Below are positions 1-36,380 of a stretch of DNA of 64,000 nt, piece after piece. The stretch is taken from IMG/VR virus record IMGVR_UViG_3300020188_000808, positions 62,001 to 126,000 of that record; one strand, 5' to 3'. The notes below the pieces were generated by a model. It was given only the letters and a program-made list of their open reading frames with translations, did no database searches and had not been told where the DNA came from. The translations under genes were made by a program, and so were the position numbers. How positions within the stretch are numbered: the stretch's first letter is position 1; every line of letters begins with the position of its first letter.

Positions 1-1889
1 CCAACTGATGCATCTGTTACAACTGATGATACTTGTGTATCAGTACCTGGTACTTCGTAAATACTTGGATATCCTCTTTGCATAGCAATCGCTTGCCATT
101 TAGTGGGCTGTAACCCGTATTCAAAGTCAGCATCAAGCATAGATACTGAGTTACTAACACGCATACGTTCAATAGCATCTGTACCAAAGTCATGTGGTCT
201 AGTAATAACATCACCTTGATCAATAAAGATTTGAATATCATCTGTATCGTAAAATTGTTTAACTTCTTCTTTGATTGGTAATACATTTAATCCGTTTTCA
301 ATAACGTTTGTAATAACACCAAATAGTTCTGTTACTCTTTGACTAACATTTAATTCACTAATTTGTAAAATAGTATTTTGTGAAATTGCACCTGCACCAA
401 CTTGTTCTGTTGGGTATAGTGTATTTGAAAAAATGTAATTGTTAATTACATCTCTAGCAAAATGTTTTGCTAAAATTTCTGGCATTCTATCGCCGTCAAT
501 TTGTGGCGTAGTTTGTACCCAATACTTACTAGCATTGTAATGTGTTTTTGTATTTCCAGAATATTTAATATCGTGTGTAATTCCTTCAATATTAAATCCC
601 ATATCTCTTTCACACTTAGCAGTATTGTATGTATAGTTGTACCATACATCTGAAATTGCATTAGCTGTTGCTGATACAAATATGTGATCTGAAGTATCAG
701 ATGAAATACCAACATTAATTGTAACTGTGTCTGTAGTAGAACTTTCAATTAAAATTGGTTTATTATAAGTTGGATCTGTTCCTGTATCATTAGGCACACC
801 ACTTGCTCTTGGATATGCATGTTCAGTAGCATGATTATCTTTAGCACAAGTAAATGTTAAACCACCAGGAGCAATTCTAATATAATCTCCTCTATAAAAC
901 GTATGACTAGGAATTGTTAAAACCATTTGGCCACTTGCTGGACTAAATGTTGCCGCAGTTGGAGTAAATCTTGTACTTGCCGCAACTTTACCTGCAATCC
1001 AAGCAACAGTTTCTTTCTTTAAAAACTCTAAGTTTGCTTCTAATAGTGCTACTGCTTTTGGAGAATAAACTCTATTATCTGTATCTTTCTTTAGGTATAC
1101 TGTAGTAACTGTACCAGTTCTTTCAAGGAACTTTGGAAAGTCTTCTTCAATACCTTTAGTTAACTGTGAAGTATCATCTGTTTGGAATGCAGTTGACGCA
1201 CCTAAATCAGGGTCACTAAAGTTATATAAAATTTCGTTGTTTGTTGAATCTGTAATCAACAATAAATCGTTTGCAGGAACACGAGTTTGAATTTTAACAC
1301 TTGAAATTTGTGATCTCTGTAGTGGAGGAATAACATCTAAGCCGCCTGCAATAACAGTTGTAATGATTCCCATTAGTTCTGTTATTCTTGCATCAGTACC
1401 TGTTTCATAGTTACTGCCGTTGTCATAAACTTGCACTTGTGCTGGTGGTTCTGATTGTAAACTTGTGTAAGGAACTTGTGGTAGAATGTAGTTATTAATT
1501 AAACTAACAACAAAGTTCTTAGCCGCAATTTCAGGAGCTCTATCACCATCAATCTGCGGAGTTGAATTAATCCAATACTTACTTGCTAAGAAACGTGCTT
1601 GATAATTTCCGCCATAACGCAAATCCCAAAGTACGCCGGTTGCTCCGTCTGTACCTTCTAAATTGTATCGTGTATCTCGTCTACATAGTACATCATTGTA
1701 TGTGTAGTTGTACCATATTGATCCTGGATTACCTGTATTTGCCGCAACTTGTGCAGTAAGCCATGCTGACAGTTCTTCAACAATAAAGTTAATGTTTGAT
1801 TTTATTAGACTGTATGCATACGGAAATCTATTTTCACTAATAGGAATTCCTGGTTGAAATATATACGAGTCAATTTTTTTCTTTGCCAT
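1..1889 (-). CDS. Large virion structural/fibre protein, N-terminal part (runs off window start)
   Basis: ATG at 1889 (MAKKKIDSYIFQPG...). Read by hand as open to the window edge. Two YNYTYN..C.RD modules like those in 13609..19731. Absent from the ORF track, presumably because no stop lies in the window. Confidence 0.75.
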   Translation of the reverse strand, partial: MAKKKIDSYIFQPGIPISENRFPYAYSLIKSNINFIVEELSAWLTAQVAANTGNPGSIWYNYTYNDVLCRRDTRYNLEGTDGATGVLWDLRYGGNYQARFLASKYWINSTPQIDGDRAPEIAAKNFVVSLINNYILPQVPYTSLQSEPPAQVQVYDNGSNYETGTDARITELMGIITTVIAGGLDVIPPLQRSQISSVKIQTRVPANDLLLITDSTNNEILYNFSDPDLGASTAFQTDDTSQLTKGIEEDFPKFLERTGTVTTVYLKKDTDNRVYSPKAVALLEANLEFLKKETVAWIAGKVAASTRFTPTAATFSPASGQMVLTIPSHTFYRGDYIRIAPGGLTFTCAKDNHATEHAYPRASGVPNDTGTDPTYNKPILIESSTTDTVTINVGISSDTSDHIFVSATANAISDVWYNYTYNTAKCERDMGFNIEGITHDIKYSGNTKTHYNASKYWVQTTPQIDGDRMPEILAKHFARDVINNYIFSNTLYPTEQVGAGAISQNTILQISELNVSQRVTELFGVITNVIENGLNVLPIKEEVKQFYDTDDIQIFIDQGDVITRPHDFGTDAIERMRVSNSVSMLDADFEYGLQPTKWQAIAMQRGYPSIYEVPGTDTQVSSVVTDASV

Positions 1890-1897
1890 CTGTTTTC

Positions 1898-2926
1898 CTA
1901 CATTCCGAAAGCAACAGCCATTGCTGATGCCCTACTGTCTACATATTTTTTGTTAGTAACTGTTGTAGCTGTTGTTGGGTTTGCTTGTACTTGTGCCGAA
2001 GCAAACGTTGCATTAGCCGGAGTTACTGCTCCAATTGTAGTGTTATTTATTGTTCCTGCGGTTGCTGTTAGGTTGTTAGTGATAACTGACCCTGGCTTAG
2101 TCGAACCAATACTTACACCATCTATATTGCCGCCACCTGCTGGTGCAATAGTTAATCTACCACTACCTGTTGGGCTTACATTTACATTCGCATTTAAACC
2201 TGTAAAGTTTGCAGTATCTGTTACTGTTAATAAGTTAGCAGTAATATCCATGTTATTAAGTGTTCCACCGTTTGATGGATTTATTACTACTGTTCCTGAA
2301 CTTCCAGTTGGAGATAGTGTAATAACTGCATTCTCACCCTGGGCTGTTAAGTTACCGGTTGTTGTAATTCTACTAAAATTACCAATACCACTAACTAGTG
2401 GATCAATAACTGTAATTTCTACTAAAGGTATTTGGTCACCGTCACCATACCATAATGTTGCTGGTGCATTATCTGGAACTGCAAAGGTTATTTTACCTTC
2501 AAATTTACTTTGTGCATCATTGCCTGTAAGTGTTGTAAGACCGTCTTTAGAAGTATGTGTTAGCCCTGTATTAAAGTTAGAATATACACTACCATCAAAG
2601 CTGAATATATTCATTGTGATGTCACCAGTTATATCACCAGCTTCATTTAATTCTCTTAAAAATAAGTTAAAAACATAACTACTTCCTCGAACAAGCTCAA
2701 TTGGTGGATTTAGTAATAACTCATCTGGTTCGTCTGGATTATATACTTCGTCAATAGTAAATCCGTTACCTGCTTGTCTAAATAAGAAATCGCCAGCTGT
2801 ATCAACAACCTCGTCGACAACGGTATATGTTAATGTGCGTACACTAACATTACCAACTTCGTCAACTTCAAACCCTGGACTAGTAAATCCATACTGTGCT
2901 TGAAAGGGTGATTTAATTACTGCCAT
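1898..2926 (-). CDS. Virion structural/fibre protein with degenerate cupredoxin-like module
   Basis: 342 aa. LVRGSSYVFN...FAVPDNAPATLWY module without Cys/His ligands. Thr-rich beta repeats. C-terminal NKKYVDSRASAMAVAFG. Confidence 0.65.
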   Translation of the reverse strand: MAVIKSPFQAQYGFTSPGFEVDEVGNVSVRTLTYTVVDEVVDTAGDFLFRQAGNGFTIDEVYNPDEPDELLLNPPIELVRGSSYVFNLFLRELNEAGDITGDITMNIFSFDGSVYSNFNTGLTHTSKDGLTTLTGNDAQSKFEGKITFAVPDNAPATLWYGDGDQIPLVEITVIDPLVSGIGNFSRITTTGNLTAQGENAVITLSPTGSSGTVVINPSNGGTLNNMDITANLLTVTDTANFTGLNANVNVSPTGSGRLTIAPAGGGNIDGVSIGSTKPGSVITNNLTATAGTINNTTIGAVTPANATFASAQVQANPTTATTVTNKKYVDSRASAMAVAFGM

Positions 2927-2951
2927 TTATGTTCTCCAATAGTATTTATCA

Positions 2952-4646
2952 CTAGTTTTGTACTACTATTAATCCATGCATTGCACCATGGAATTGACAA
3001 TTATAATGATATGTTCCTGCCGCAGTAGGTTCCCAAACTACATTTCCTGATGTTGAACCTTGGCCTGTAGCCGCTGGTGAAACAACATTGCCAGTACCTG
3101 TTGAGTTTACTGTCTTAATGTAGAACGGATGTCCTGGAGCATTAACAGCAAATGTAAGTGTATCGCCAACACTAACTGTAACTGTTTGATTATTTCCGGA
3201 AACTGCTCCTAATGCGTCTGTGCCTGATAATACATATGCACCTGACCCGTCATTAGTTGTATTAATTGTATAGCTATCTCCTGGTGTTGTACTTGTGTCG
3301 ACAATAGCTAAGTTAAATGTTGATTCGCCATTATCTAATGAAATTACAAATCCTTCATCGCCTTCTGTTGTTGCATCAGCAGTTGCAGTAAATGTTAATG
3401 AGTCTGTTGTACCAACAACAAAGTTACCTGTTAAAGAAGCTCCTGCTAAATCTGCACTAGTAACACCTGTAATTGTATAAGGTAGTACTGTACCATTGTC
3501 AACATTTGAAGTGCTAAGTGTAATTGTAAATGCGTTTCCTTCGTTAACTGTTGTCTGTGTTGATCCTAAAGTATAACTTGGAATTAAAGGACTTAAACTT
3601 GTGTCGCCAAACGCAACTTCAACTGTTGTAGCAGTACCGTCAATTGACATTACAAAAGTTTCGTCGCCGTCAGTATTTAAATCTTCAGCCGCAGTAAACA
3701 CAATAGATTCTGTAGTTCCTACTTCAAAGTTTCCAGATAGATCAGCGCCGCCTATGTCTGAACTGTCAACGCCAGTAATTGTATATCCAACTAAAGTTCC
3801 TTCTTCAACATTTTCTGCTGTTAGAGTAATTGTAAATGATTCACCTTCGTTAACACTTGCCGCTGTTGATGTAAGTCCGTAACTAACAGATGGTGTTGTA
3901 CTTGTATCTTGAATAACAATACTTGTAGTAGCTTGGTTGTTGTCAAGTTTAATTTGCAGTACTTCTTGTCCTTCTGAAGTTGAATCAACAGTAATTGGAA
4001 AACTAAGAATATCAGTAGTACCAACAATAAATGATCCTGTAAGATTAAATCCGCCTATGTCTGCACTTTGTATTCCTGAAATTGTATAAGGTAATACTGT
4101 ACCTGCAAGTACATTTGATGTAACTAATGTTATTGTAACTGTTTGTCCAAGTTCGCCTGTGTTTGTAGTACTTGGGTTAAGTGTATAAACTGGTGCGTCG
4201 GCCGCTCTGCTTGATCCTAACAATGTTGCTGTAGGTTCGTTTTGTGTCGCATAATAATTTGCTGAATAAATTACTTTTGCACCTTGGATAGCTGTTGAGT
4301 CATCTTGTACTCTTGGATATGCTACTAATTTAAAGAATGAATCTGTAACTTCAACTTCTAATTGTATTAGATCGTTTCCTAAATTACTACGTCCATATAC
4401 AACAATATTTGCTTCACTAGTACTAGCAGTTGCTAAACACTTAAGAACTTCTTTGCGTTCACTGTTTACATCACACGCAACAGTATATTCAACACCGAAA
4501 TAACTTCCTACATACCAGCGATCTAATTCTGTTCCTGATTCTACTAGTGTATAACTTGGACCTGCGTAAGACAAGTTGGTTCCGTTACGAAACTCAATTG
4601 TACTGTTTTGTCCACGTCTAAAATATTTGGTGATATCGAAGCTCAT
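2952..4646 (-). CDS. Virion protein with 3 Calx-beta/Ig-like repeats and C-terminal cupredoxin (plastocyanin-like) domain
   Basis: 564 aa. Three ~100-aa repeats (VNEG.SFTITL...GT.LPYTITG). C-terminal GHPF...YNCQFHGAM copper-ligand pattern. Confidence 0.7.
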   Translation of the reverse strand: MSFDITKYFRRGQNSTIEFRNGTNLSYAGPSYTLVESGTELDRWYVGSYFGVEYTVACDVNSERKEVLKCLATASTSEANIVVYGRSNLGNDLIQLEVEVTDSFFKLVAYPRVQDDSTAIQGAKVIYSANYYATQNEPTATLLGSSRAADAPVYTLNPSTTNTGELGQTVTITLVTSNVLAGTVLPYTISGIQSADIGGFNLTGSFIVGTTDILSFPITVDSTSEGQEVLQIKLDNNQATTSIVIQDTSTTPSVSYGLTSTAASVNEGESFTITLTAENVEEGTLVGYTITGVDSSDIGGADLSGNFEVGTTESIVFTAAEDLNTDGDETFVMSIDGTATTVEVAFGDTSLSPLIPSYTLGSTQTTVNEGNAFTITLSTSNVDNGTVLPYTITGVTSADLAGASLTGNFVVGTTDSLTFTATADATTEGDEGFVISLDNGESTFNLAIVDTSTTPGDSYTINTTNDGSGAYVLSGTDALGAVSGNNQTVTVSVGDTLTFAVNAPGHPFYIKTVNSTGTGNVVSPAATGQGSTSGNVVWEPTAAGTYHYNCQFHGAMHGLIVVQN

Positions 4647-4746: not shown

Positions 4747-6558
4747 CTAATTTTTTAATGTTACTAGCTTTTGATATTCAGGTAGATAAAGATATTCGAT
4801 GTCACTATTAGCAAGTGTACGTACTGCATCATCAAGTGTTTCAACTAAAGGCTCGCCACCTAAATTAAAACTTGTATTAAAGATAATACTAATACCTGTG
4901 CGTTCTTTAAATGCTTTAATTACATCATAGTAGTGTTTATTTTGATCTCTATTAACAGTTTGAATACGACATGTTCCGTCAACATGAATAATACTTGGAA
5001 TCTTATCTGCAATGCCGTCTTGGCAGTTTACAGCATACATCATTGTTGGTGAACTTTTCATTCCACGTAGGTCAAACCATTCATGTACATCTTCTTCTAA
5101 AATAGATCCTGCAAACGGACGAAAGTATTCACGTCTTTTAACTTTGTTTACATAATCTTTACCATTAGGATCTGTTGGATCGTACATAATAGTTCTATTA
5201 CCTAATGCACGTGGTCCGTTTTCTGAACGTCCTTGGAATAATGTAACGATTTTTCTATCTACTAATAATTCTACTGCTTTTGCGTTGTCGCAATCTTCAA
5301 CAGTTGCTTCGTATTTTTCTACTACTTTGTTAATATCATCTTCAGAATAACAGTAAGCCGGTCCTTCATATAATGTTTCTTGTTGTTTTTGAACTTTGTT
5401 ACTTTTAGTTAAACGTCTGTGCATTAACATTGCACCGCCCATGGCTGTACCTGCATCGTTACTTACTGGCTCAACATAGATTTCAATTCCGTCATCTTTT
5501 AATGCTTCTAAATAATGATAGTTAGCAACACAGTTAAGTCCATATCCTCCACTAATAACTACTTTATTTTTTCCTGACATTTGAACTGCTTTACGAATTA
5601 ATTTAACAACTTCTTCTTGGCTTTCAGTTTGAATATTATATGCCATGTTGCGTCTATTTTCTAAATAGGTTACGTCTTGCGTTTCTGGATTGTCGCCGTG
5701 GTCAGTTAAGTAAGGGTGCATATTGTAATTAACATGAGCTCCATTAGGATATGTTGGAACAATAACATGTCTATCTGCTTGTGAAGTTAATGTATCATGT
5801 CTAAAGATTTTTGGTGCAGTATCAGCTTTTCCATATGGAAATAGTCCCATAGTCTTGCCTGCTTCAATAAAACTAAATCCACAGTATTCTGTTACTGCCT
5901 CATATGCTTTAACAATTCCAGCATTTTCTGAAATAACTAACTCATGTGTAGCTTCTTTATCTTCGTCATACATTTCACTTGAAAACTCAGGTATCCAAGC
6001 ACCCATTAAAGGACCGTTAGCACCAATGTGCTTGTATAATGTTTTAAAATTGTCAGGATAATTACAATCGTAAATACTTTCAGTTTCCCAAACAGTAGTA
6101 GGTTGCCCGCCAATATCTAATGTAATAAAAGTTCCTGCACCATCTACAATAAGTGCTACTGCATCTTCAAATCCTGAACGATAAAATGCACAAGCCGCAT
6201 GTAACTTGTGATGAATATTTGACATGTCAATTACTTGTGGATGAGATGTACCAGTGTAAGGTAATCTTTTAATTAATCCTAACTTACGTGCAAGACCTGT
6301 ATAAACATCGTCTCCACTAAAGTCTACTTTACCAGCAGTTTGATCTAAATTTTGTGTATGTGCAACAACTAAAAAATCTAATGTATCAGTGTATTCAAGT
6401 ATTTTAACCATACTTGCATATGGCCCGCCATCATACTTTTGTCTAGTTAATCGTTCTTCTTCAATTGAAAAAACAATTTCACCATCTTTTAATAAACATA
6501 CTCCGCCGTTGTGTCCTCTAGCGATTCCTGCAATCCATACTGGCTTTTTAGTTGGCAT
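4747..6558 (-). CDS. O-carbamoyltransferase, NodU/CmcH/TobZ family
   Basis: 603 aa. Motifs EEERLTRQK, HHKLHA, DGAG, GKTMGL, GG..LNCVAN, GPRALGNR, KRREYFRPFA, HVDGTCRIQTV, NTSFN..GEP. Confidence 0.92.
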   Translation of the reverse strand: MPTKKPVWIAGIARGHNGGVCLLKDGEIVFSIEEERLTRQKYDGGPYASMVKILEYTDTLDFLVVAHTQNLDQTAGKVDFSGDDVYTGLARKLGLIKRLPYTGTSHPQVIDMSNIHHKLHAACAFYRSGFEDAVALIVDGAGTFITLDIGGQPTTVWETESIYDCNYPDNFKTLYKHIGANGPLMGAWIPEFSSEMYDEDKEATHELVISENAGIVKAYEAVTEYCGFSFIEAGKTMGLFPYGKADTAPKIFRHDTLTSQADRHVIVPTYPNGAHVNYNMHPYLTDHGDNPETQDVTYLENRRNMAYNIQTESQEEVVKLIRKAVQMSGKNKVVISGGYGLNCVANYHYLEALKDDGIEIYVEPVSNDAGTAMGGAMLMHRRLTKSNKVQKQQETLYEGPAYCYSEDDINKVVEKYEATVEDCDNAKAVELLVDRKIVTLFQGRSENGPRALGNRTIMYDPTDPNGKDYVNKVKRREYFRPFAGSILEEDVHEWFDLRGMKSSPTMMYAVNCQDGIADKIPSIIHVDGTCRIQTVNRDQNKHYYDVIKAFKERTGISIIFNTSFNLGGEPLVETLDDAVRTLANSDIEYLYLPEYQKLVTLKN

Positions 6559-7378
6559 CTTTTATTCCTCTGTAACTTCTATCCCAATTTACTAACTTAG
6601 TAATATTTTTAATAGTTTGTTTATAGTCATTAGTTTTACACTCTATAACAGTATCTATCATTTTTTTCGTTGTATCATCTAAGTTCTGGTTTAAATATGA
6701 CTGCACAAAACTTAAATGTTGTGTTGGACTAGGGTGTAACTCTACCCATTTTTCACCGTTTTCTTCAAACCACCAACTGTGTTCTGGACTATTCCAAGCA
6801 TGTAACCCTAAAGGTTCTAACCATTCAGGTCCTTCTAACACATATCTATATTGTTCTAAATTAAATTCTTTAAATGCATCAGCAAGTTCGGGAGTATTTC
6901 TTAAATTTTCTCCATGTCCTTTTTGATGCGGTATATCAGTACCTAACGTTTCTAAGTTACTAATACTTGTAAAATAAAACTTGCAATTAGTATCTTTTAA
7001 TAATCCTTTAGTAAGTATGATGTTATTCATTGTATGTAAAAACAATGCTTTCTCATCATAAAAAGTTTCTATCCATTTATCATCAAATACTTCTTTATTC
7101 TGATAACTGAATATACTACCTTTAGTTTGCCAAGGTTCTTTGTGCTTAAAGTTAAGATAGTCGTAACGTAAATGACTTGACCATTGTACGATTACTGTAT
7201 CGTCTTTGTCAATTTCATTTGTAGCATGGCATTCTGCAACACGTTCAGCAATGGCTCTGTTACCTAAACCTGCGTGTCCCCAGTTTTGATATTCATCGAA
7301 ATCTTGTGCATATATGTCTGCATATGTAGGCCAATTCCATGATGTATAGGAACATCCAAACACAAATAAACGTTTCAT
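6548..7378 (-). CDS. SGNH/GDSL-like hydrolase-fold protein
   Basis: 276 aa. N-terminal FVFGCSYT, G.GN, IVQWS, C-terminal ELHPS. Confidence 0.6.
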   Translation of the reverse strand: MKRLFVFGCSYTSWNWPTYADIYAQDFDEYQNWGHAGLGNRAIAERVAECHATNEIDKDDTVIVQWSSHLRYDYLNFKHKEPWQTKGSIFSYQNKEVFDDKWIETFYDEKALFLHTMNNIILTKGLLKDTNCKFYFTSISNLETLGTDIPHQKGHGENLRNTPELADAFKEFNLEQYRYVLEGPEWLEPLGLHAWNSPEHSWWFEENGEKWVELHPSPTQHLSFVQSYLNQNLDDTTKKMIDTVIECKTNDYKQTIKNITKLVNWDRSYRGIKDAN

Positions 7379-12150: not shown

Positions 12151-12891
12151 TTAACTGTACGATACTTTAACCATTCCGCCTGAGCCCCAATGGCCCCAAC
12201 AGCATGGTCCGCCACATGCAGTACCATTATATCCAGCGTCCCCTGGGTAAGGTTGAGCACAACCCCATCCGCAACCTGAACAAGTCATTGGATTACCGCA
12301 ATAATCTCGACCTTTTCTAGTATTTGCACCTTTTGGTGGTCCACTTACGTAGTCCCACATTTGATTGTGACAATATTGTGTAGCCATAGGATTATTTCTA
12401 CTATGACCTAATCTTAAATCGCCCTGCGTACCGCCCGAAATTTGTGAACATCCAAAGCAACAGTTATATGCATAATGTGCATGACAGTTTGTTCTACCTG
12501 TACATCCACCTCTAGCACACGTAGTTGCAATACCAGATCCTGATACAAAACTAGTTGAACCATCAATGCCTAAGCAATCTCTTTCACAACATGCTCCGTT
12601 ACCAGCCGCACAAATTGTGTATTGGCAACCAGCTATTGTGTTTACTGATCTAATTGCGTATGATCCGCCGCCTGCGTTCTGTGAACTAAACTGACAGCAA
12701 CATCCTCCTGCTCCTGCGGCTCCTGCACCCCATAGCTCAAATGTTACGTTAACAATGTCTGCTGGTACTGTCCAAAGACAACAGCAACCGCCATTATTAA
12801 TACCCCTATTATTGTTGTACACATAGAAGAACTTTGTAGGAGCCGAAGTTCCCGAAGTAGTATCTCCTAAAAGTGTTCTCAGGTCTGCCAT
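12151..12891 (-). CDS. Cys/Gly-rich fibre-tip (gp38-adhesin-like) protein
   Basis: 246 aa, 25 Cys by hand count. GGCCCLWTVP...WGAGAAGAGGCCC...GSGGMVKVSY. Confidence 0.65.
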   Translation of the reverse strand: MADLRTLLGDTTSGTSAPTKFFYVYNNNRGINNGGCCCLWTVPADIVNVTFELWGAGAAGAGGCCCQFSSQNAGGGSYAIRSVNTIAGCQYTICAAGNGACCERDCLGIDGSTSFVSGSGIATTCARGGCTGRTNCHAHYAYNCCFGCSQISGGTQGDLRLGHSRNNPMATQYCHNQMWDYVSGPPKGANTRKGRDYCGNPMTCSGCGWGCAQPYPGDAGYNGTACGGPCCWGHWGSGGMVKVSYS

Positions 12892-12909
12892 AGTTAGTAT
12901 CCTCTCTTC

Positions 12910-13242
12910 TTACGTTCCTGACATAATCCAGCCGTATGTGGACCCGGAATAAATCAATGTAATAGCTACGTTATTAATGTCTAAAGTTAAGTCTTCTGAT
13001 AAATTCTGGATTTTTGAACCGTTTCTACCAAGTGTTACATTGTTAGTATTAAAACTACCTGTAACATCAATGATTGAAATAGTATCGTTTACAATTAAAC
13101 TAGCGTTAGCTGGTAAAGTAATTGTGAATCCACCACCATTTGAATTAGCTAAAATACGATCGTTAACTACAGCTTGATACGTGCTACTAACTTCACGAAT
13201 GACGCTACTTGCAGTTCCTGTTGTTGATATATATCTTCCCAT
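12910..13242 (-). CDS. Small fibre-associated beta protein
   Basis: 110 aa. GGFTITLPA...IIDVTGSFNTNNVTLGRNGSKI...LIYSGSTYGW, a pattern typical of phage fibre domains. Confidence 0.6.
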   Translation of the reverse strand: MGRYISTTGTASSVIREVSSTYQAVVNDRILANSNGGGFTITLPANASLIVNDTISIIDVTGSFNTNNVTLGRNGSKIQNLSEDLTLDINNVAITLIYSGSTYGWIMSGT

Positions 13243-13275
13243 TTTAGTGTTTCCTTTTTATTACTATATTTATCA

Positions 13276-13596
13276 TTATGCTGTAGATGTCTCAATACCC
13301 ATTGCTACTGCACTGACATTTGCGGCACTACTATAAACTACCAGAATTTGCCCTGCCGCCATTGCAATACCTGATCTTTCTAACACACCTTTAGCTAAAA
13401 TTTCAACATCATATTCAATGTATTCACTTGCTAGTGGTGTACCAGCTGATGCGACAGCAACTCTTACCGAAATTGCACTATTTCCTCTATTACAAATCGA
13501 TAGCGTTACAATCCCGAAGGTGTTTGCAGGTACCGTGTAAAGAGAAGTGTTAGTGCCAGCGGCTAAGTCTGCGTGTCCTAATCTTCCTGTGGCCAT
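13276..13596 (-). CDS. Small beta-sandwich virion protein (paralog of 25495..25824 and 29440..29772)
   Basis: 106 aa. LYTVPA...LSICN motif. Confidence 0.6.
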   Translation of the reverse strand: MATGRLGHADLAAGTNTSLYTVPANTFGIVTLSICNRGNSAISVRVAVASAGTPLASEYIEYDVEILAKGVLERSGIAMAAGQILVVYSSAANVSAVAMGIETSTA

Positions 13597-30804: not shown

Positions 30805-31230
30805 TTAGTCTGCTGGATCGTCTGACTCAAAGTCATCAGCATCTGGTGCGCCATCAACGTTGTCGATAACAGCATCATCACCTGCTTCTTCCATTTCAAC
30901 AGTAGCACCTGTACCAGTGAAGTCCCATTTGATCTTATCGCCTGCTCCTTCAAGTTGTACCAAGTGTGCAGTAATCTTAGTTACTTGCTTTGGAGTTGCT
31001 CCGTCTAAGACTGTAATAGTCATTTCGCCTGCCGCAACTGCCGCACTTGCTTTATTAACTAAGAAACAATCTTTTGTAGCTGTACCGTCTGTGCAACGGA
31101 ATTTTTTACTTCCAAGTTGCTTAACAATCCAGCCGTTTACTGATCCAGTTCCATTGTGAAACTGTACTTTAATTTCGTCACCGCCTGCTGTAGGTGGGCC
31201 AAAATATCTTTTGTTTAGTGGTCTTCCCAT
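30805..31230 (-). CDS. Hypothetical late protein (MGRPLNKRYFG...)
   Basis: 141 aa. Strong RBS, late promoter at 31318-31324, acidic tail. Confidence 0.7.
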   Translation of the reverse strand: MGRPLNKRYFGPPTAGGDEIKVQFHNGTGSVNGWIVKQLGSKKFRCTDGTATKDCFLVNKASAAVAAGEMTITVLDGATPKQVTKITAHLVQLEGAGDKIKWDFTGTGATVEMEEAGDDAVIDNVDGAPDADDFESDDPAD

Positions 31231-31328
31231 TTGTTTTCTCCTTTAAAACGTTCTAGGTTTACGCAGTGGGTCAGTTCTGCATAAGTCCGCAACATGCGGC
31301 ACGATTATTGACACAAGTATTTATCTGA

Positions 31329-31736
31329 TTAATCAATTCGTACGGTTAATGAAATAAAATCCCTTACAAAATCAAATTGTGTTTCTAATACTTCAAACAG
31401 ATGGCCGTTTAAACTTGTTTTAACTAGGCTGTAGCTGTTCTTTCCTATGTTGCTATAGTAATGCTTGTCTAAGCCGTATCGACGTCCGTAAGACGGAAAT
31501 ACGCTTGTTACAAATAGGCATGTGTCACCTAATTCTTTAGCTGTTAATCTATAAGGTTGTTTTAGTGCAAGGTAAGATTGTGCAAAACTTTCAACGGGAA
31601 GGAAATTTGGTTTATCTATTTTAGATGCAAGAAGCATTACTACATATGCTTCAACTTCTACCGGAAGTTCGTATCCTGTAGTCGACTGTGTCTCTTGGAC
31701 AAGGTCGTAAAAGACTGTGGTGTACTCGTCCTTCAT
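31329..31736 (-). CDS. Hypothetical protein resembling a bacterial conserved family (LGDTCLF...YY..IG..SY)
   Basis: 135 aa, with its own CTAAATA promoter motif at 31742-31748. Confidence 0.6.
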   Translation of the reverse strand: MKDEYTTVFYDLVQETQSTTGYELPVEVEAYVVMLLASKIDKPNFLPVESFAQSYLALKQPYRLTAKELGDTCLFVTSVFPSYGRRYGLDKHYYSNIGKNSYSLVKTSLNGHLFEVLETQFDFVRDFISLTVRID

Positions 31737-31752: not shown

Positions 31753-31780
31753 AAAAATAGGCCCAATTATTGGGCCTATT
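31753..31780 (-). terminator. Intrinsic terminator after the transporter gene
   Basis: ATAGGCCCAA/TTGGGCCTAT stem followed by a T-tract on the minus strand. Confidence 0.8.
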
Positions 31781-31786
31781 CTGGTT

Positions 31787-32752
31787 TTACATTCCTATTT
31801 GATTAGGAACAATGATGTAGTGAATAGCAAGTACCACTCCAACTGATGCGCCTAAGCCAATCATCATCTTAAAGAAGTCTTTGGTCACCAACGGAAATAC
31901 TGTCTTAAACTTTTCCTTGCCTGTCATAGTTGCCATAGCAAGTTCACGTCCACATAGTAGTCCTACAAACACCCACGTTGTTGACATAGGTATATCGTTT
32001 AGTTCTTTAAAGAAGAATAAGATCAACCAGTACACACCATCAATGATAGTTGCTGAACGCACATATCTTGTGTTGTGTTTTTCTAGTACAATCTTTTGGA
32101 TCTTACCACCACCCTCTCTAAACATAAATGCTAGTCCTACAACAAACACAACGCTCACTAGGATCATTAGGTCCCATGGAACTTGTCTGGGAAGGAACAC
32201 AGCAATATTTGCCATGTCATGACTTAGCCAAGTAAACCACAGGAAGCCTGTTGTTACCCATTGTGCTATTCGCCACGCTTTCTTATGTTGTTCTTTGACA
32301 GGCTTTGCTTCGTCTAGTAGTTTAGTAACTCCTATCCAAATAATGTATGCCGCGACTGCCGCGACAGCATAGCCCATCATGCTTTTCATAAGCATCTTCT
32401 CTAGTACAAAGGTACTTGCGAAGGCACTTAATACTAAAAAAGAAGTACTAACTGGTACTCCTATTCGTGTAAGTATTAATAATAGTCCTGGTGCCATTGC
32501 GTGATACCATTGTATCTCTTGGAACGGTATTTTGTTTAGTCGTCCATAACTAATATCTCCACCGTTGGTATACCAACCATACCAAAGTGTATACAGTAGA
32601 ACAGCCGAAGCCGCTCCCCACATCGCTTTCCAATTAAATTTTTCGTTATTACTTGCGATCCATGTACCGAGAGTCTGTACACTATCATTTGCGATAACTG
32701 CGTAACCTGCGAACAGGAAACCTACAGCCATCCATAGGGTGAGTGCGTCCAT
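31787..32752 (-). CDS. PiT-like (phosphate transporter-related) membrane protein
   Basis: Start moved to ATG 32752 (RBS GGAG at 32761-32764), 321 aa. Multiple TM segments. IANDSVQTLGT and LSHDMANIAV resemble the two PiT signature repeats. Confidence 0.65.
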   Translation of the reverse strand: MDALTLWMAVGFLFAGYAVIANDSVQTLGTWIASNNEKFNWKAMWGAASAVLLYTLWYGWYTNGGDISYGRLNKIPFQEIQWYHAMAPGLLLILTRIGVPVSTSFLVLSAFASTFVLEKMLMKSMMGYAVAAVAAYIIWIGVTKLLDEAKPVKEQHKKAWRIAQWVTTGFLWFTWLSHDMANIAVFLPRQVPWDLMILVSVVFVVGLAFMFREGGGKIQKIVLEKHNTRYVRSATIIDGVYWLILFFFKELNDIPMSTTWVFVGLLCGRELAMATMTGKEKFKTVFPLVTKDFFKMMIGLGASVGVVLAIHYIIVPNQIGM

Positions 32753-32862
32753 TATTATTTCTCCTCTGCTTGCCGCTTTTACCACGGCGCTCACATACTA
32801 AGACAAGGCTCAACGTTGCCCTGCTGGAACATTATTGTTCGCAATTATTTAGTGAATAGAAG

Positions 32863-32880
32863 ATTACAGTTTTGTTACAG
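32863..32880 (-). promoter_or_regulatory. Pho-box-like direct repeat
   Basis: Minus strand CTGTAAC-AAAA-CTGTAAT, 11-bp period, upstream of the PiT-like gene. Resembles the PhoB consensus CTGTCAT-A(A/T)A(T/A)-CTGT(C/A)A(C/T). Confidence 0.55.
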
Positions 32881-32884
32881 TGAC

Positions 32885-32912
32885 AAAAAAAGCACCCGAA
32901 GGTGCTTTTTTT
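32885..32912. terminator. Bidirectional intrinsic terminator
   Basis: AAAAAAAGCACC-TTCG-GGTGCTTTTTTT on the minus strand (UUCG loop). Confidence 0.85.
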
Positions 32913-32914
32913 GG

Positions 32915-33226
32915 TTACTTCTCTTGTGCTGGGAAGTCTAATGGATTCCTTGGTTTAAACTGAATGTTCATATCGGTTAGATATGGATCGCAACCTTTGT
33001 CTTCTAAACGCATTGCGAGCCACATCTCAAATGACTCCTTGTCTTCAAACGTACGAGTAAACTCGTAACTCTTGAACGGTAATTCCCTATTGAACGTTAC
33101 TACTACTTCGTTCGCGTTTGCGTCTGTAACAAATCCAAACATCACTGTTACAAACATTACAAGTCCTATAAGCATTACACTCAATGCTCCGGGACAATTC
33201 TTTTCATTACAACTTGTACCTATCAT
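32915..33226 (-). CDS. Hypothetical protein with N-terminal membrane anchor
   Basis: Best RBS spacing gives ATG 33226 (track start 33238). Hydrophobic segment LSVMLIGLVMFVTVMFGFV. Confidence 0.55.
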   Translation of the reverse strand: MIGTSCNEKNCPGALSVMLIGLVMFVTVMFGFVTDANANEVVVTFNRELPFKSYEFTRTFEDKESFEMWLAMRLEDKGCDPYLTDMNIQFKPRNPLDFPAQEK

Positions 33227-33249
33227 CATAGTCTCCAAATTTTAGTCAT

Positions 33250-33479: not shown

Positions 33480-33776
33480 TCACACGCAACCAGTCGGCTT
33501 GGGGAGCCCACCATACTTGGCAATCTGTTTCATTGGACCGGTCTTCCAAGCATCATACAGGCCTTTTGCTTTGCGATCCATGCCCAATGCTTTACCAAAG
33601 TCCTTTACTCGTGGCACCATTGATGTTTCTTCATACATAGAACGTGCTAACATAATGTGGCTTACCTGTTCTTCGGTAAGCGTCTTGTCATCTTCACGAG
33701 CCATAGAGTGCATTACTTCCTCACTCCAATCACTCATTGACACGAGGAATCCGTCACCGTCTCTTTCAATACTCAT
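33480..33776 (-). CDS. tusE: TusE/DsrC-family sulfur relay protein
   Basis: 98 aa. N-terminal DGDGFL...DWSEE and C-terminal GLPKPTGCV with penultimate Cys. Confidence 0.9.
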   Translation of the reverse strand: MSIERDGDGFLVSMSDWSEEVMHSMAREDDKTLTEEQVSHIMLARSMYEETSMVPRVKDFGKALGMDRKAKGLYDAWKTGPMKQIAKYGGLPKPTGCV

Positions 33777-34219: not shown

Positions 34220-34420
34220 CTACTTGACTGATAAGTTTATAGCAGAAGGGCCTTTTGGACCATCCTGTGTTTCAAACTCTACAGTATCGCCTTCATTCAA
34301 CGAGTGTAAGCCTGCGGCTTCTACTGCTGAAATGTGTACGAAGATATCTTTGTCTTCGGTAGCGATAAATCCAAAACCTTTAGTGGCATTGAACCATTTT
34401 ACTTTTCCTTGATTACTCAT
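34220..34420 (-). CDS. cspA: Cold-shock domain protein
   Basis: 66 aa. [15 protein letters not shown] (RNP1) and DIFVHISA (RNP2). Confidence 0.95.
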
Positions 34421-35210: not shown

Positions 35211-36380
35211 TTAAGAGAAAGTAGGTGTAGATGTAAAGCTAACTGTACCTAAGTAGTCTGCCGCATTACCTAGAGACGATGCTGTGTTTGACAACTCAAC
35301 ATATCCGTATCTAGTCATAAAGCTAACTACTGGCTCAAAGCTATCTGGATCTAACACTACGCCACTGCTCATTAATGGAATGTATGGGCAGTAGAACGCT
35401 GGTGCGTCTGATTCAGAAGAACCTTTGTAACCAACTAGTACCGCTGTGTCATCTGCCGCGTAACTATCAACATAAACTTTCATAGCTGAATTTAATGTTC
35501 CAACCATTTTAGTGTTTGTTGGTGCTTCGAATGAACCTTCAGTTGTTCTTGCGAACGCTGAAGTAGTTGCACTCTGAAGTACAGTTAACGCTTGTGGAGA
35601 TACCACTGCGTAGTTACCAGCACCACGACGTGTACGCTGAGCAATAACGTTAGCAACACGGTTGATCATTACAGCTAAAGCCGCATGTTCGTCACCAACG
35701 AATGTTGCAGTACCGCTAACAGCAGTCTGATCGTAGTTTTGGTTGTTAGTTGATCCAGCTAATGCACGTAAAGAAGCTAATACTTCTTGGTCGATCTCAG
35801 CAGTAATCTCTTGGGCTAGTGCCGCCATGATTTCTGCTTCGATGTCAATGCCTTGCTGTGCTTGAGCATCTTGAGCCGCTTCAAAAGTCCATCTAGCTGA
35901 TAGCTTTCTGGTTTTTGCTTCGACTGTTTGCTTTAAGATCTGAATTGACAATCTCTTGCCTGCCGCACCTTCAAGAGCCGCTGTTGCAGATCCTTTTGGT
36001 GATGCATCAGTAGCGTTACCTGAGTAAGCCGCCGCGATCTTAAATGGTGATAGTGCTTCTTCACCAACTTCGTTACCATCAGATGTATCTGAGTAACGTA
36101 CTCTTAATGTGTGGATTTGACCCACTGGACCTGTCATAGGCTGTACACCGACCAATTCGTTGGCGATAACAGTTGGCATGACACGTCTGATTACTGGTAG
36201 GATAACTCTATTTAGAGTTGCAACATTACCGGCGCTTGTGCTTCCGGCTGTAGCAGTCTCATTCAACCACTTGCGTGTGTTTTCAAGAGTGCTTGCCATG
36301 ATTGCTTTCTTATTGCCTTGAAGGCCTTCTAAAAGTGCAACCTTGGTATCCTGCCAGCGACTTTCTAGTAGTTCTGACAT
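35211..36380 (-). CDS. gp23: Major capsid protein, T4 gp23-like
   Basis: 389 aa. VIRRVMPTVIANELVGVQPMTGPVGQIHTLR, KTRKLSARWTFEAAQD, FYCPYIPL, FMTRYG. Confidence 0.95.
   Translation of the reverse strand: MSELLESRWQDTKVALLEGLQGNKKAIMASTLENTRKWLNETATAGSTSAGNVATLNRVILPVIRRVMPTVIANELVGVQPMTGPVGQIHTLRVRYSDTSDGNEVGEEALSPFKIAAAYSGNATDASPKGSATAALEGAAGKRLSIQILKQTVEAKTRKLSARWTFEAAQDAQAQQGIDIEAEIMAALAQEITAEIDQEVLASLRALAGSTNNQNYDQTAVSGTATFVGDEHAALAVMINRVANVIAQRTRRGAGNYAVVSPQALTVLQSATTSAFARTTEGSFEAPTNTKMVGTLNSAMKVYVDSYAADDTAVLVGYKGSSESDAPAFYCPYIPLMSSGVVLDPDSFEPVVSFMTRYGYVELSNTASSLGNAADYLGTVSFTSTPTFS

Follow-up and report, generated by a model that had tools for sequence, protein, structure and literature searches.

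A predicted phosphate-transporter cassette with a Pho-box-like operator and a conserved folded RNA leader in a large salt-marsh phage

Known systems and anatomy of the locus

Host Pho control of phage genes has so far been shown mainly for pstS and a few other genes in cyanophages. In P-SSM2 and S-PM2d, a lytic phage places a phosphate-acquisition gene behind a host-type Pho box, so that the starvation sensor of the host drives it, and host PhoB control of cyanophage genes has been shown by EMSA (PMC10976474). In E. coli, the Pho-box promoters of pstS, phoA and phoB comprise two 7-bp direct repeats separated by an A/T-rich 4-bp spacer, and PhoB contacts a TGTCA tract in each repeat (PMC4447250, PMC4415409). 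In the work of Makino and Wanner, these repeats are reported to stand in place of the -35 element and 10 bp before the -10 element. PiT transporters (SLC20, PHO4, PF01384), including TmPiT of Thermotoga maritima and PitA of E. coli, have two inverted repeats carrying ND and P-x-S-T-T motifs, and PHO4-family transporters are encoded by viruses of eukaryotic algae (PMC3429862). Finally, structured RNA leaders precede auxiliary genes in marine phages, such as the PhotoRC motifs before psbA and the glutamine riboswitches of cyanophages.

We examined a 64,000-nt stretch of DNA (the window), corresponding to bases 62001-126000 of a 267,783-bp IMG/VR virus record with 36% G+C and an estimated completeness of 75%. 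The gp23-type capsid protein is 66-71% identical to those of jumbo myoviruses of Sinorhizobium, Vibrio, Pseudomonas (PA5oct) and Cronobacter. Near-identical DNA was found in about 20 salt-marsh metagenome and metatranscriptome runs. The initial annotation had described a Pho-box-like repeat located 10 bp before a CTAAATA word and ahead of a gene with PiT-like signature repeats. This observation proved to be real, with correct coordinates and sequence (Table 1). The GTG at 32794, which had been taken as the start codon, is less likely than the ATG at 32752, because all relatives start at the ATG.

Table 1. Features of the cassette and its surroundings, in window coordinates
Feature	Position	Strand	Description
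Terminator hairpin	32884-32913		Two-way intrinsic terminator, 13 pairs, A-run and T-run flanks; ends the upstream ORF and insulates the cassette
Pho-box-like operator	32863-32880	-	Two 7-bp direct repeats, CTGTAAC and CTGTAAT, separated by AAAA (11-bp period)
Spacer	32853-32862	-	10 nt
Promoter core	32845-32852	-	CTAAATAA, 10 bp after the box, no -35 hexamer
Leader hairpin P1	32827-32840	-	GAAC/GTTC stem
Leader hairpin P2	32803-32824	-	7 pairs, conserved loop AACGUYGA
Leader core P3	32768-32794	-	GUGAGC, 5-bp variable stem, loop GGUAAAR, AA bulge, GC; ends 1 nt before the ribosome-binding site
Ribosome-binding site	32761-32766	-	GAGGAG
PiT-fold permease gene (predicted)	31787-32752	-	321 aa, stop codon included
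Terminator hairpin	31756-31780		Closes the cassette
DsrC/TusE-like gene	33480-33776		About 700 bp away
gp23-type capsid gene	35211-36380	-

A divergent protein with a predicted PiT fold

For the protein, Pfam gave only a PHO4 hit below the gathering score (15.9 bits against 33.7, E 0.0066), while distant members of the family reached 20-28 bits. PHROGs returned no match, tblastn against 50,697 phage records returned none, and the NCBIfam hits (ZupT and MnhC) were weak and were judged spurious. Nevertheless, the family is abundant in metagenomes: more than 7,800 relatives were scored, the top ones being about 90% identical, 514 IMG/VR loci were found, and an exhaustive search gave 851 clusters at 50% identity. 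The named records that we inspected call the protein hypothetical, whereas the automatic label of the ESM Atlas is "phosphate/sulfate permease". Phosphate-related auxiliary genes are therefore probably under-counted in viromes.

A profile built from 32 diverse relatives hit a single PDB sequence, the T. maritima Na/Pi transporter 6l85 (E 1e-5). The AlphaFold model is confident (pLDDT 93.3, pTM 0.90) and matched only 6l85, with a Foldseek probability of 1.0 and a TM of 0.62, all other hits having a TM below 0.25. VIA-align gave a Z of 21.8 and an rmsd of 3.7 A over 290 of 321 residues, the next best hit having a Z of 6.9. The model thus has the PiT fold, in which the transport domain consists of two inverted repeats with re-entrant hairpins.

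The signature repeats reported in the initial annotation are real and correspond to ANDSV at 21-25, PVSTS at 100-104, SHDMAN at 177-182 and PMSTTW at 255-260. The G-x-N-D-x and P-x-S-x-T motifs of the PiT family are represented in both repeats, the second ND motif reading HD. The residues that bind Pi and Na+ in TmPiT are N21/D22, S105-T107, N257/D258, S345-T347 and D327 (PMC7413737), which are equivalent to N22/D23, S102/T103/S104, H178/D179, S257/T258/T259 and D238 in this protein. They are largely conserved across the family. The eight Pi-contacting residues of TmPiT are kept apart from T107, which is Ser here, and the N257 equivalent is His or Gln in this family.

Three observations link the family to phosphate. 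One distant member is fused to a PstS-type PBP_like_2 domain and lies next to PPK2, and another is fused to a phosphate-selective porin domain (Porin_O_P). In L127 (L numbers designate individual loci), a phage pstS gene (PF12849, E 1e-49) is directly followed by a PiT-like gene 77% identical to the one studied here. Transport was not measured, and the other cellular homologues examined, from a Bradymonadales MAG and others, mostly lie in contexts unrelated to phosphate. We therefore consider this protein to be a divergent branch of the PiT superfamily, a member by fold and ligand residues but not by the sequence threshold of Pfam, with phosphate as its likely substrate.

Box, promoter core and leader RNA in related phages

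Taken alone, the box is no better than a chance match to the Pho-box consensus. With up to 3 mismatches to CTGTCATAWAWCTGTCAY, there are 3 matches in the 268-kb genome against 0-5 (mean about 2.3) in shuffles, and a looser scan of the window gave 2 matches against 1.8 expected. The other consensus-like matches in the genome lie inside genes on the antisense strand and were dismissed as chance. However, the box is the only one of 17 relaxed-box matches in the genome that is intergenic and upstream of a gene, and the word TGTAACAAAACTKTAAT occurs only once in the genome. The phoH gene of this genome has no box, and the record, which is an estimated 75% complete, shows no pstS.

Comparison with related loci makes the box credible. 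Conservation upstream of orthologs had been put forward in the initial annotation as a way of probing the claim, and we found that TGTAACAAAACTKTAAT with up to 2 mismatches occurs in 25 of 80 orthologous loci, always 97-176 nt before the gene and on the same strand, while being almost absent elsewhere in 494 kb. Sequence similarity between loci with different upstream genes begins exactly at the 5' end of the box. We then collected the 110 distinct contexts carrying the core of the leader described below and searched the 160 nt upstream. TGTNAY-N5-TGTNAY was found in 19 of 110, about 70 times the background rate, and in 39 of 110 in its relaxed version, whereas the same half-sites at spacings N3, N4, N6 and N7 were found in 0-2 of 110 and the reverse orientation in 3 of 110. 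As the 110 contexts share ancestry, this enrichment overstates the number of independent events. The repeat keeps its 7+4+7 geometry while its sequence drifts.

The boxes fall into several sequence types. TTGTCAT-AAAT-CTGTTAC and close variants, which are near-consensus for proteobacteria, precede the PiT-like gene in L099, L122, L140 and L207, and TTGTCAT-ATTT-CTGTTAC precedes pstS in L127. The type xTGTAAT-CTGT-xTGTAAT precedes an outer-membrane-barrel (OMP-like) gene, itself ahead of a PiT-like gene, in L108, L119 and L143, and the PiT-like gene in L162 and L173. TTGTAAT-AAAA-CTGTAAT precedes the PiT-like gene in L104, L109 and L194. The type found in the window and others, before the PiT-like gene, is YTGTAAC-AAAA-CTKTAAT. 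The same operator therefore stands before other phosphate-starvation genes, with half-sites reading TGTCA, TGTTA or TGTAA. Both half-sites of the window read TGTAA rather than the TGTCA tract contacted by E. coli PhoB, and since no host has been identified, the specificity of its PhoB is not known. No OmpR/PhoB-type DNA-binding domain was found in the 268 kb of phage DNA, so a host factor is the simplest reader of the site.

With regard to the promoter, no sigma-70 promoter with a -35 is detectable in the window at this locus, where the box takes the place of the -35. Seven distinct contexts show the box, 10 nt of unrelated sequence and then YTAAATA, and L127 shows the box, 10 nt and then TATACT. 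In contrast, about half of the relatives carry a full TTGACA-N17-TATAAATA promoter between the box position and the gene, and in these the box is decayed or absent. Where a box remains, its second half-site has usually changed to CTTTAAT and its spacing to the -35 varies from 3 to 8 bp. Constitutive or early expression is therefore common in the family. In a third arrangement (L263, L128, L109 and L122), the box, N10 and TTGACA are followed by the same TTCACTAAATAAT word as in the window. Relative to L263, the window has lost 10 bp including the TTGACA, which brings the box one helical turn closer to CTAAATAA. The window is therefore one of the variants that depend most plausibly on the box, whereas the family as a whole switches between activator-type and constitutive promoters.

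YWAAATAA lies 4-7 nt before hairpin P1 in nearly all contexts, and the transcript therefore probably starts at the foot of P1. In this genome, GATAAATAC is the most enriched upstream word, 24 of its 26 copies lying within 100 nt before ORFs, usually 12-35 nt before starts, and CTAAATAC variants occur 11-28 nt before several ORFs. CTAAATA-like words are used as late-type promoter words, and the late-promoter reading of the initial annotation is thus reasonable. However, CTAAATAA lies 99 nt before the start codon, and the comparison with T4-type late promoters (TATAAATA, no -35) neither places it among them nor rules it out. The sequence does not distinguish between a weak sigma-70 -10 element helped by PhoB, a late promoter, or both.

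The best-conserved non-coding part of the locus is a structured leader of about 90 nt, which the initial annotation had missed. RNAalifold on 35 distinct leaders predicted two hairpins, P2 and P3, in which 9 of 14 pairs show compensatory double changes, with 99.4% of cells paired against 82.5% in shuffles and about 30% when the partners are slid. A wider alignment of 53 matches gave the same picture, although this alignment was guided by the model and leans toward it. P1 varies in sequence but keeps its pairing in relatives, as read directly from the alignment. The P3 core ends with the return strand followed by AAGCA, and across 92 distinct instances it shows 14 different, fully complementary stems and 17 G-U pairs that would be A-C mismatches on the other strand, indicating an RNA of the sense strand. 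The ribosome-binding site starts 0-3 nt after this core. The folding energy alone is not unusual (z -0.67), so the case for structure rests on covariation. Searches against the 4227 families of Rfam 15 gave no hit covering the leader at E up to 10 in the window or up to 1 in L127 and L021. We considered and did not adopt an intrinsic terminator or attenuator (most copies have no U-tract), a K-turn, a preQ1-like pseudoknot and a nut-like boxA/boxB site (only some copies carry a boxA-like word).

A pattern scan of IMG/VR found at least 120 stretches. Most instances precede the PiT-like gene, but the same core also precedes pstS (L127 and L136), signal-peptide proteins of 180-184 aa (L096, L105, L108 and L143), a 103-aa protein matching the Pfam "cyanophage outer membrane protein-like barrel" family (L119) and one 55-aa Cys-rich ORF (L131). 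In 185,579 species genomes, the same pattern found 77 stretches, which is about the chance number. Only one of these, L263, has a paired stem, and it lies on a phage contig binned into a "Legionellales" MAG that also holds gp23 capsid genes, thus giving neither a cellular occurrence nor evidence about the host. The cellular homologues examined lack the leader motif. The leader is thus a phage-specific element shared by phosphate-uptake genes, whose ligand or partner was not identified, and its position against the ribosome-binding site suggests control of translation or of mRNA stability.

Eight salt-marsh metatranscriptome runs contain the 3,901-base stretch that was searched, but only as assembled contigs, which do not show start sites, strand or level. 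Contigs from three runs break at 32839-32868, inside the box and promoter, which fits the presence of strain variants there. We draw no conclusion about transcription or regulation from these data.

Interpretation and comparison with described systems

We consider it somewhat more likely than not that the locus is a terminator-insulated phosphate-uptake cassette of a jumbo myovirus with two control layers. In a phosphate-starved host, phosphorylated PhoB, or a close OmpR-family relative, would bind the repeat where a -35 element would be and recruit RNA polymerase, so that the phage adds a secondary-active, ion-coupled Pi permease to the membrane of the infected cell. The leader RNA would add a post-transcriptional layer, and as related phages reuse it for pstS and for an outer-membrane-barrel gene, these genes would form a small phage-borne phosphate regulon. 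The anatomy of the locus, the PiT fold and ligand residues, the conservation and enrichment of the box and the RNA structure were established computationally, whereas the binding of PhoB, phosphate as the substrate and what the leader senses or binds are inferred; neither PhoB binding nor induction under phosphate limitation was assayed. The proposal of the initial annotation, that the host phosphate sensor controls a phage PiT-type transporter rather than PstS, with a possible late-sigma input, is therefore supported in part: the PiT assignment is right and the Pho-box reading gains real comparative support, but PhoB control and the late-promoter input are inferences.

A broader reading is doubtful, although it is compatible with the data. 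In this view, a cosmopolitan group of aquatic jumbo phages carries a modular "mini Pho regulon", in which a PiT-like permease, PstS and a small outer-membrane barrel are each driven by a host-type Pho box plus a phage-specific structured leader. This leader would be a new regulatory RNA class, a riboswitch or a protein/sRNA operator, tuning translation of phosphate-uptake genes to the phosphorus or energy status of the infected cell.

The alternative that survives best, although we find it unlikely, is that the gene is expressed from a phage late-type promoter (CTAAATAA) regardless of phosphate, the repeat being a site for some other factor (a phage protein, IHF or another OmpR-family regulator) or simply the conserved left edge of a mobile promoter-leader-gene cassette. 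CTAAATAC/GATAAATAC words lie 11-35 nt before many ORFs of this genome, such promoters need no activator, the cassette sits among structural genes, and homology starting at the box is expected at a cassette border. The variable spacing to the -35 in relatives and the TGTAA half-sites also fit this view. However, only the PhoB-type spacing is enriched, near-consensus Pho boxes occur in the same place in relatives and before pstS, the single occurrence of the box shows that it is not a general late-gene element, and no OmpR-type DNA-binding domain was found in the 268 kb of phage DNA.

It is improbable that the box in this window is a decaying relic without function, with control resting entirely on the leader RNA and the core promoter. 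The chance-level match, the loss of the box or the G-to-T change in the second half-site in many relatives, and the absence of both box and leader in L040, L043 and L058 could be explained in this way. Nevertheless, the window and L024 keep both TGT triplets and the exact 10-bp spacing that other contexts share despite unrelated spacer sequence, and without the box the window promoter has no -35 at all. Equally improbable is a permease for sulfate or another oxyanion that serves the sulfur genes of the phage, the Pho-box resemblance being incidental: PiT relatives include sulfate permeases such as CysP, and the Atlas label, the nearby DsrC/TusE-like gene and the His or Gln at the N257 position are compatible with it, but the fusions and neighbours (PstS-type domain, PPK2, OprO/P porin and phage pstS) and the retained Pi-contacting residues point to phosphate, and the DsrC gene is a separate unit beyond a terminator and another ORF.

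This case would extend host Pho control of phage genes to a different transporter class, to a different host type with proteobacterial-style Pho boxes, and to jumbo phages, and the shared leader, a candidate new RNA family, gives a testable handle on post-transcriptional control of phage auxiliary genes. The published moraphage work (PMC12619734) concerns a different lineage. Compared with cyanophage pstS under host PhoBR, the logic of a phosphate gene behind a host-type box is shared, but the gene encodes a PiT-fold secondary permease rather than the PstS binding protein, the box is of the proteobacterial CTGTCAT type rather than the cyanobacterial PyTTAAPyPy(T/A) type, the capsid is nearest to those of Vibrio, Pseudomonas and Sinorhizobium jumbo phages, a structured leader is added, and the evidence is computational only. 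Compared with TmPiT and PitA, the fold, the inverted-repeat motifs and the ligand positions are the same, but identity is 14% and the protein is shorter (321 against 400-500 aa). The PHO4 transporters of algal viruses are likewise PiT-superfamily auxiliary genes, but they are canonical PHO4 genes in giant viruses of eukaryotes, whereas this is a divergent bacterial-type branch in a tailed phage with bacterial promoter logic. Compared with the E. coli Pho-box promoters, the repeat geometry and position are shared, but the half-sites are TGTAA and the -10-like element is a phage TAAATAA word that also looks like a late promoter. As with the PhotoRC motifs and glutamine riboswitches, a conserved folded 5' leader is attached to host-derived metabolic genes, but here it matches no Rfam family and is attached to phosphate-uptake genes.

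Promoter words and genes surrounding the cassette

Across the phage genome, the word GATAAATAC was found to be the most enriched upstream 8/9-mer, with 24 of its 26 copies lying within 100 nt before ORF starts. It is probably the late promoter of this phage, whereas TGGTTGACA and TATAAT-like words mark sigma-70-type promoters. One copy of GATAAATAC precedes an Rfam freshwater-2 RNA (RF02980), which scored 51.5 bits against a gathering score of 49.9 and lies directly before an ORF of 141 aa.

Two genes beside the cassette look like further host-derived auxiliary genes inside the structural-gene region. The first is a DsrC/TusE-like gene (PF04358, E 3e-22), and the second is an ORF that reads like a CspA-type cold-shock protein, an assignment that was made by inspection of its sequence, without a database search. 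The ORF upstream of the cassette encodes 107 aa with one hydrophobic segment, and no match was found to it in Pfam or PHROGs. It is preceded by TATGACTAAAAT, which is similar to the TATGACTAAATAC found before another ORF of the window.

Coordinates of the features in the window and in related phage loci
Sequence	Position	Strand	Feature
Window	30805-31230	-	141-aa ORF
Window	31228-31301	-	Freshwater-2 RNA (RF02980)
Window	about 31325		GATAAATAC preceding the freshwater-2 RNA
Window	2950, 19766, 44526		Further examples of GATAAATAC
Window	31329-31736		ORF preceded by TATGACTAAATAC
Window	32839-32868		Shared end or start of assembled contigs from RNA libraries
Window	32915-33238	-	107-aa upstream ORF
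Window	33480-33776	-	DsrC/TusE-like gene
Window	34220-34420	-	ORF reading like a CspA-type cold-shock protein
L127 (related phage)	12167-13321	-	Two-gene phosphate cluster
L108 (related phage)	239-1955	+	Two-gene phosphate cluster
L143 (related phage)	1921-3605	+	Two-gene phosphate cluster
L119 (related phage)	5833-7308	+	Two-gene phosphate cluster

Related phages and strain variants

With regard to the related phages, we observed two-gene phosphate clusters, comprising either pstS followed by a PiT-like gene or an OMP-like barrel gene followed by a PiT-like gene. In these clusters, each gene has its own copy of the leader. The phage PiT cassette was also found (locus L263) in a GTDB species genome titled Legionellales bacterium SP228, a MAG that contains gp23-type capsid genes on two other contigs. 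This is phage contamination of a bin and should not be read as evidence about the host. In the window itself, assembled contigs of three salt-marsh RNA libraries all end or begin within the same short interval, which indicates the presence of co-existing strain variants that differ in the box and promoter region.

Additional elements upstream of the PiT-like gene

A second conserved element, TTGTAAAGGCTGTCATGC-N7-GCATGAC, was identified about 120-170 nt before the PiT-like gene in seven related loci (L016, L028, L032, L036, L041, L075 and L077), where it lies between divergent promoters. This element, whose role is unknown, contains a CTGTCAT half-site and a 7-bp inverted repeat with a G-U-compatible variant.

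Between hairpins P2 and P3, the leaders of four related loci (L021, L036, L049 and L079) carry CUCUUUUAACAA, which resembles the rrn/lambda boxA antitermination word, whereas the window has only GUCUUA at that place.
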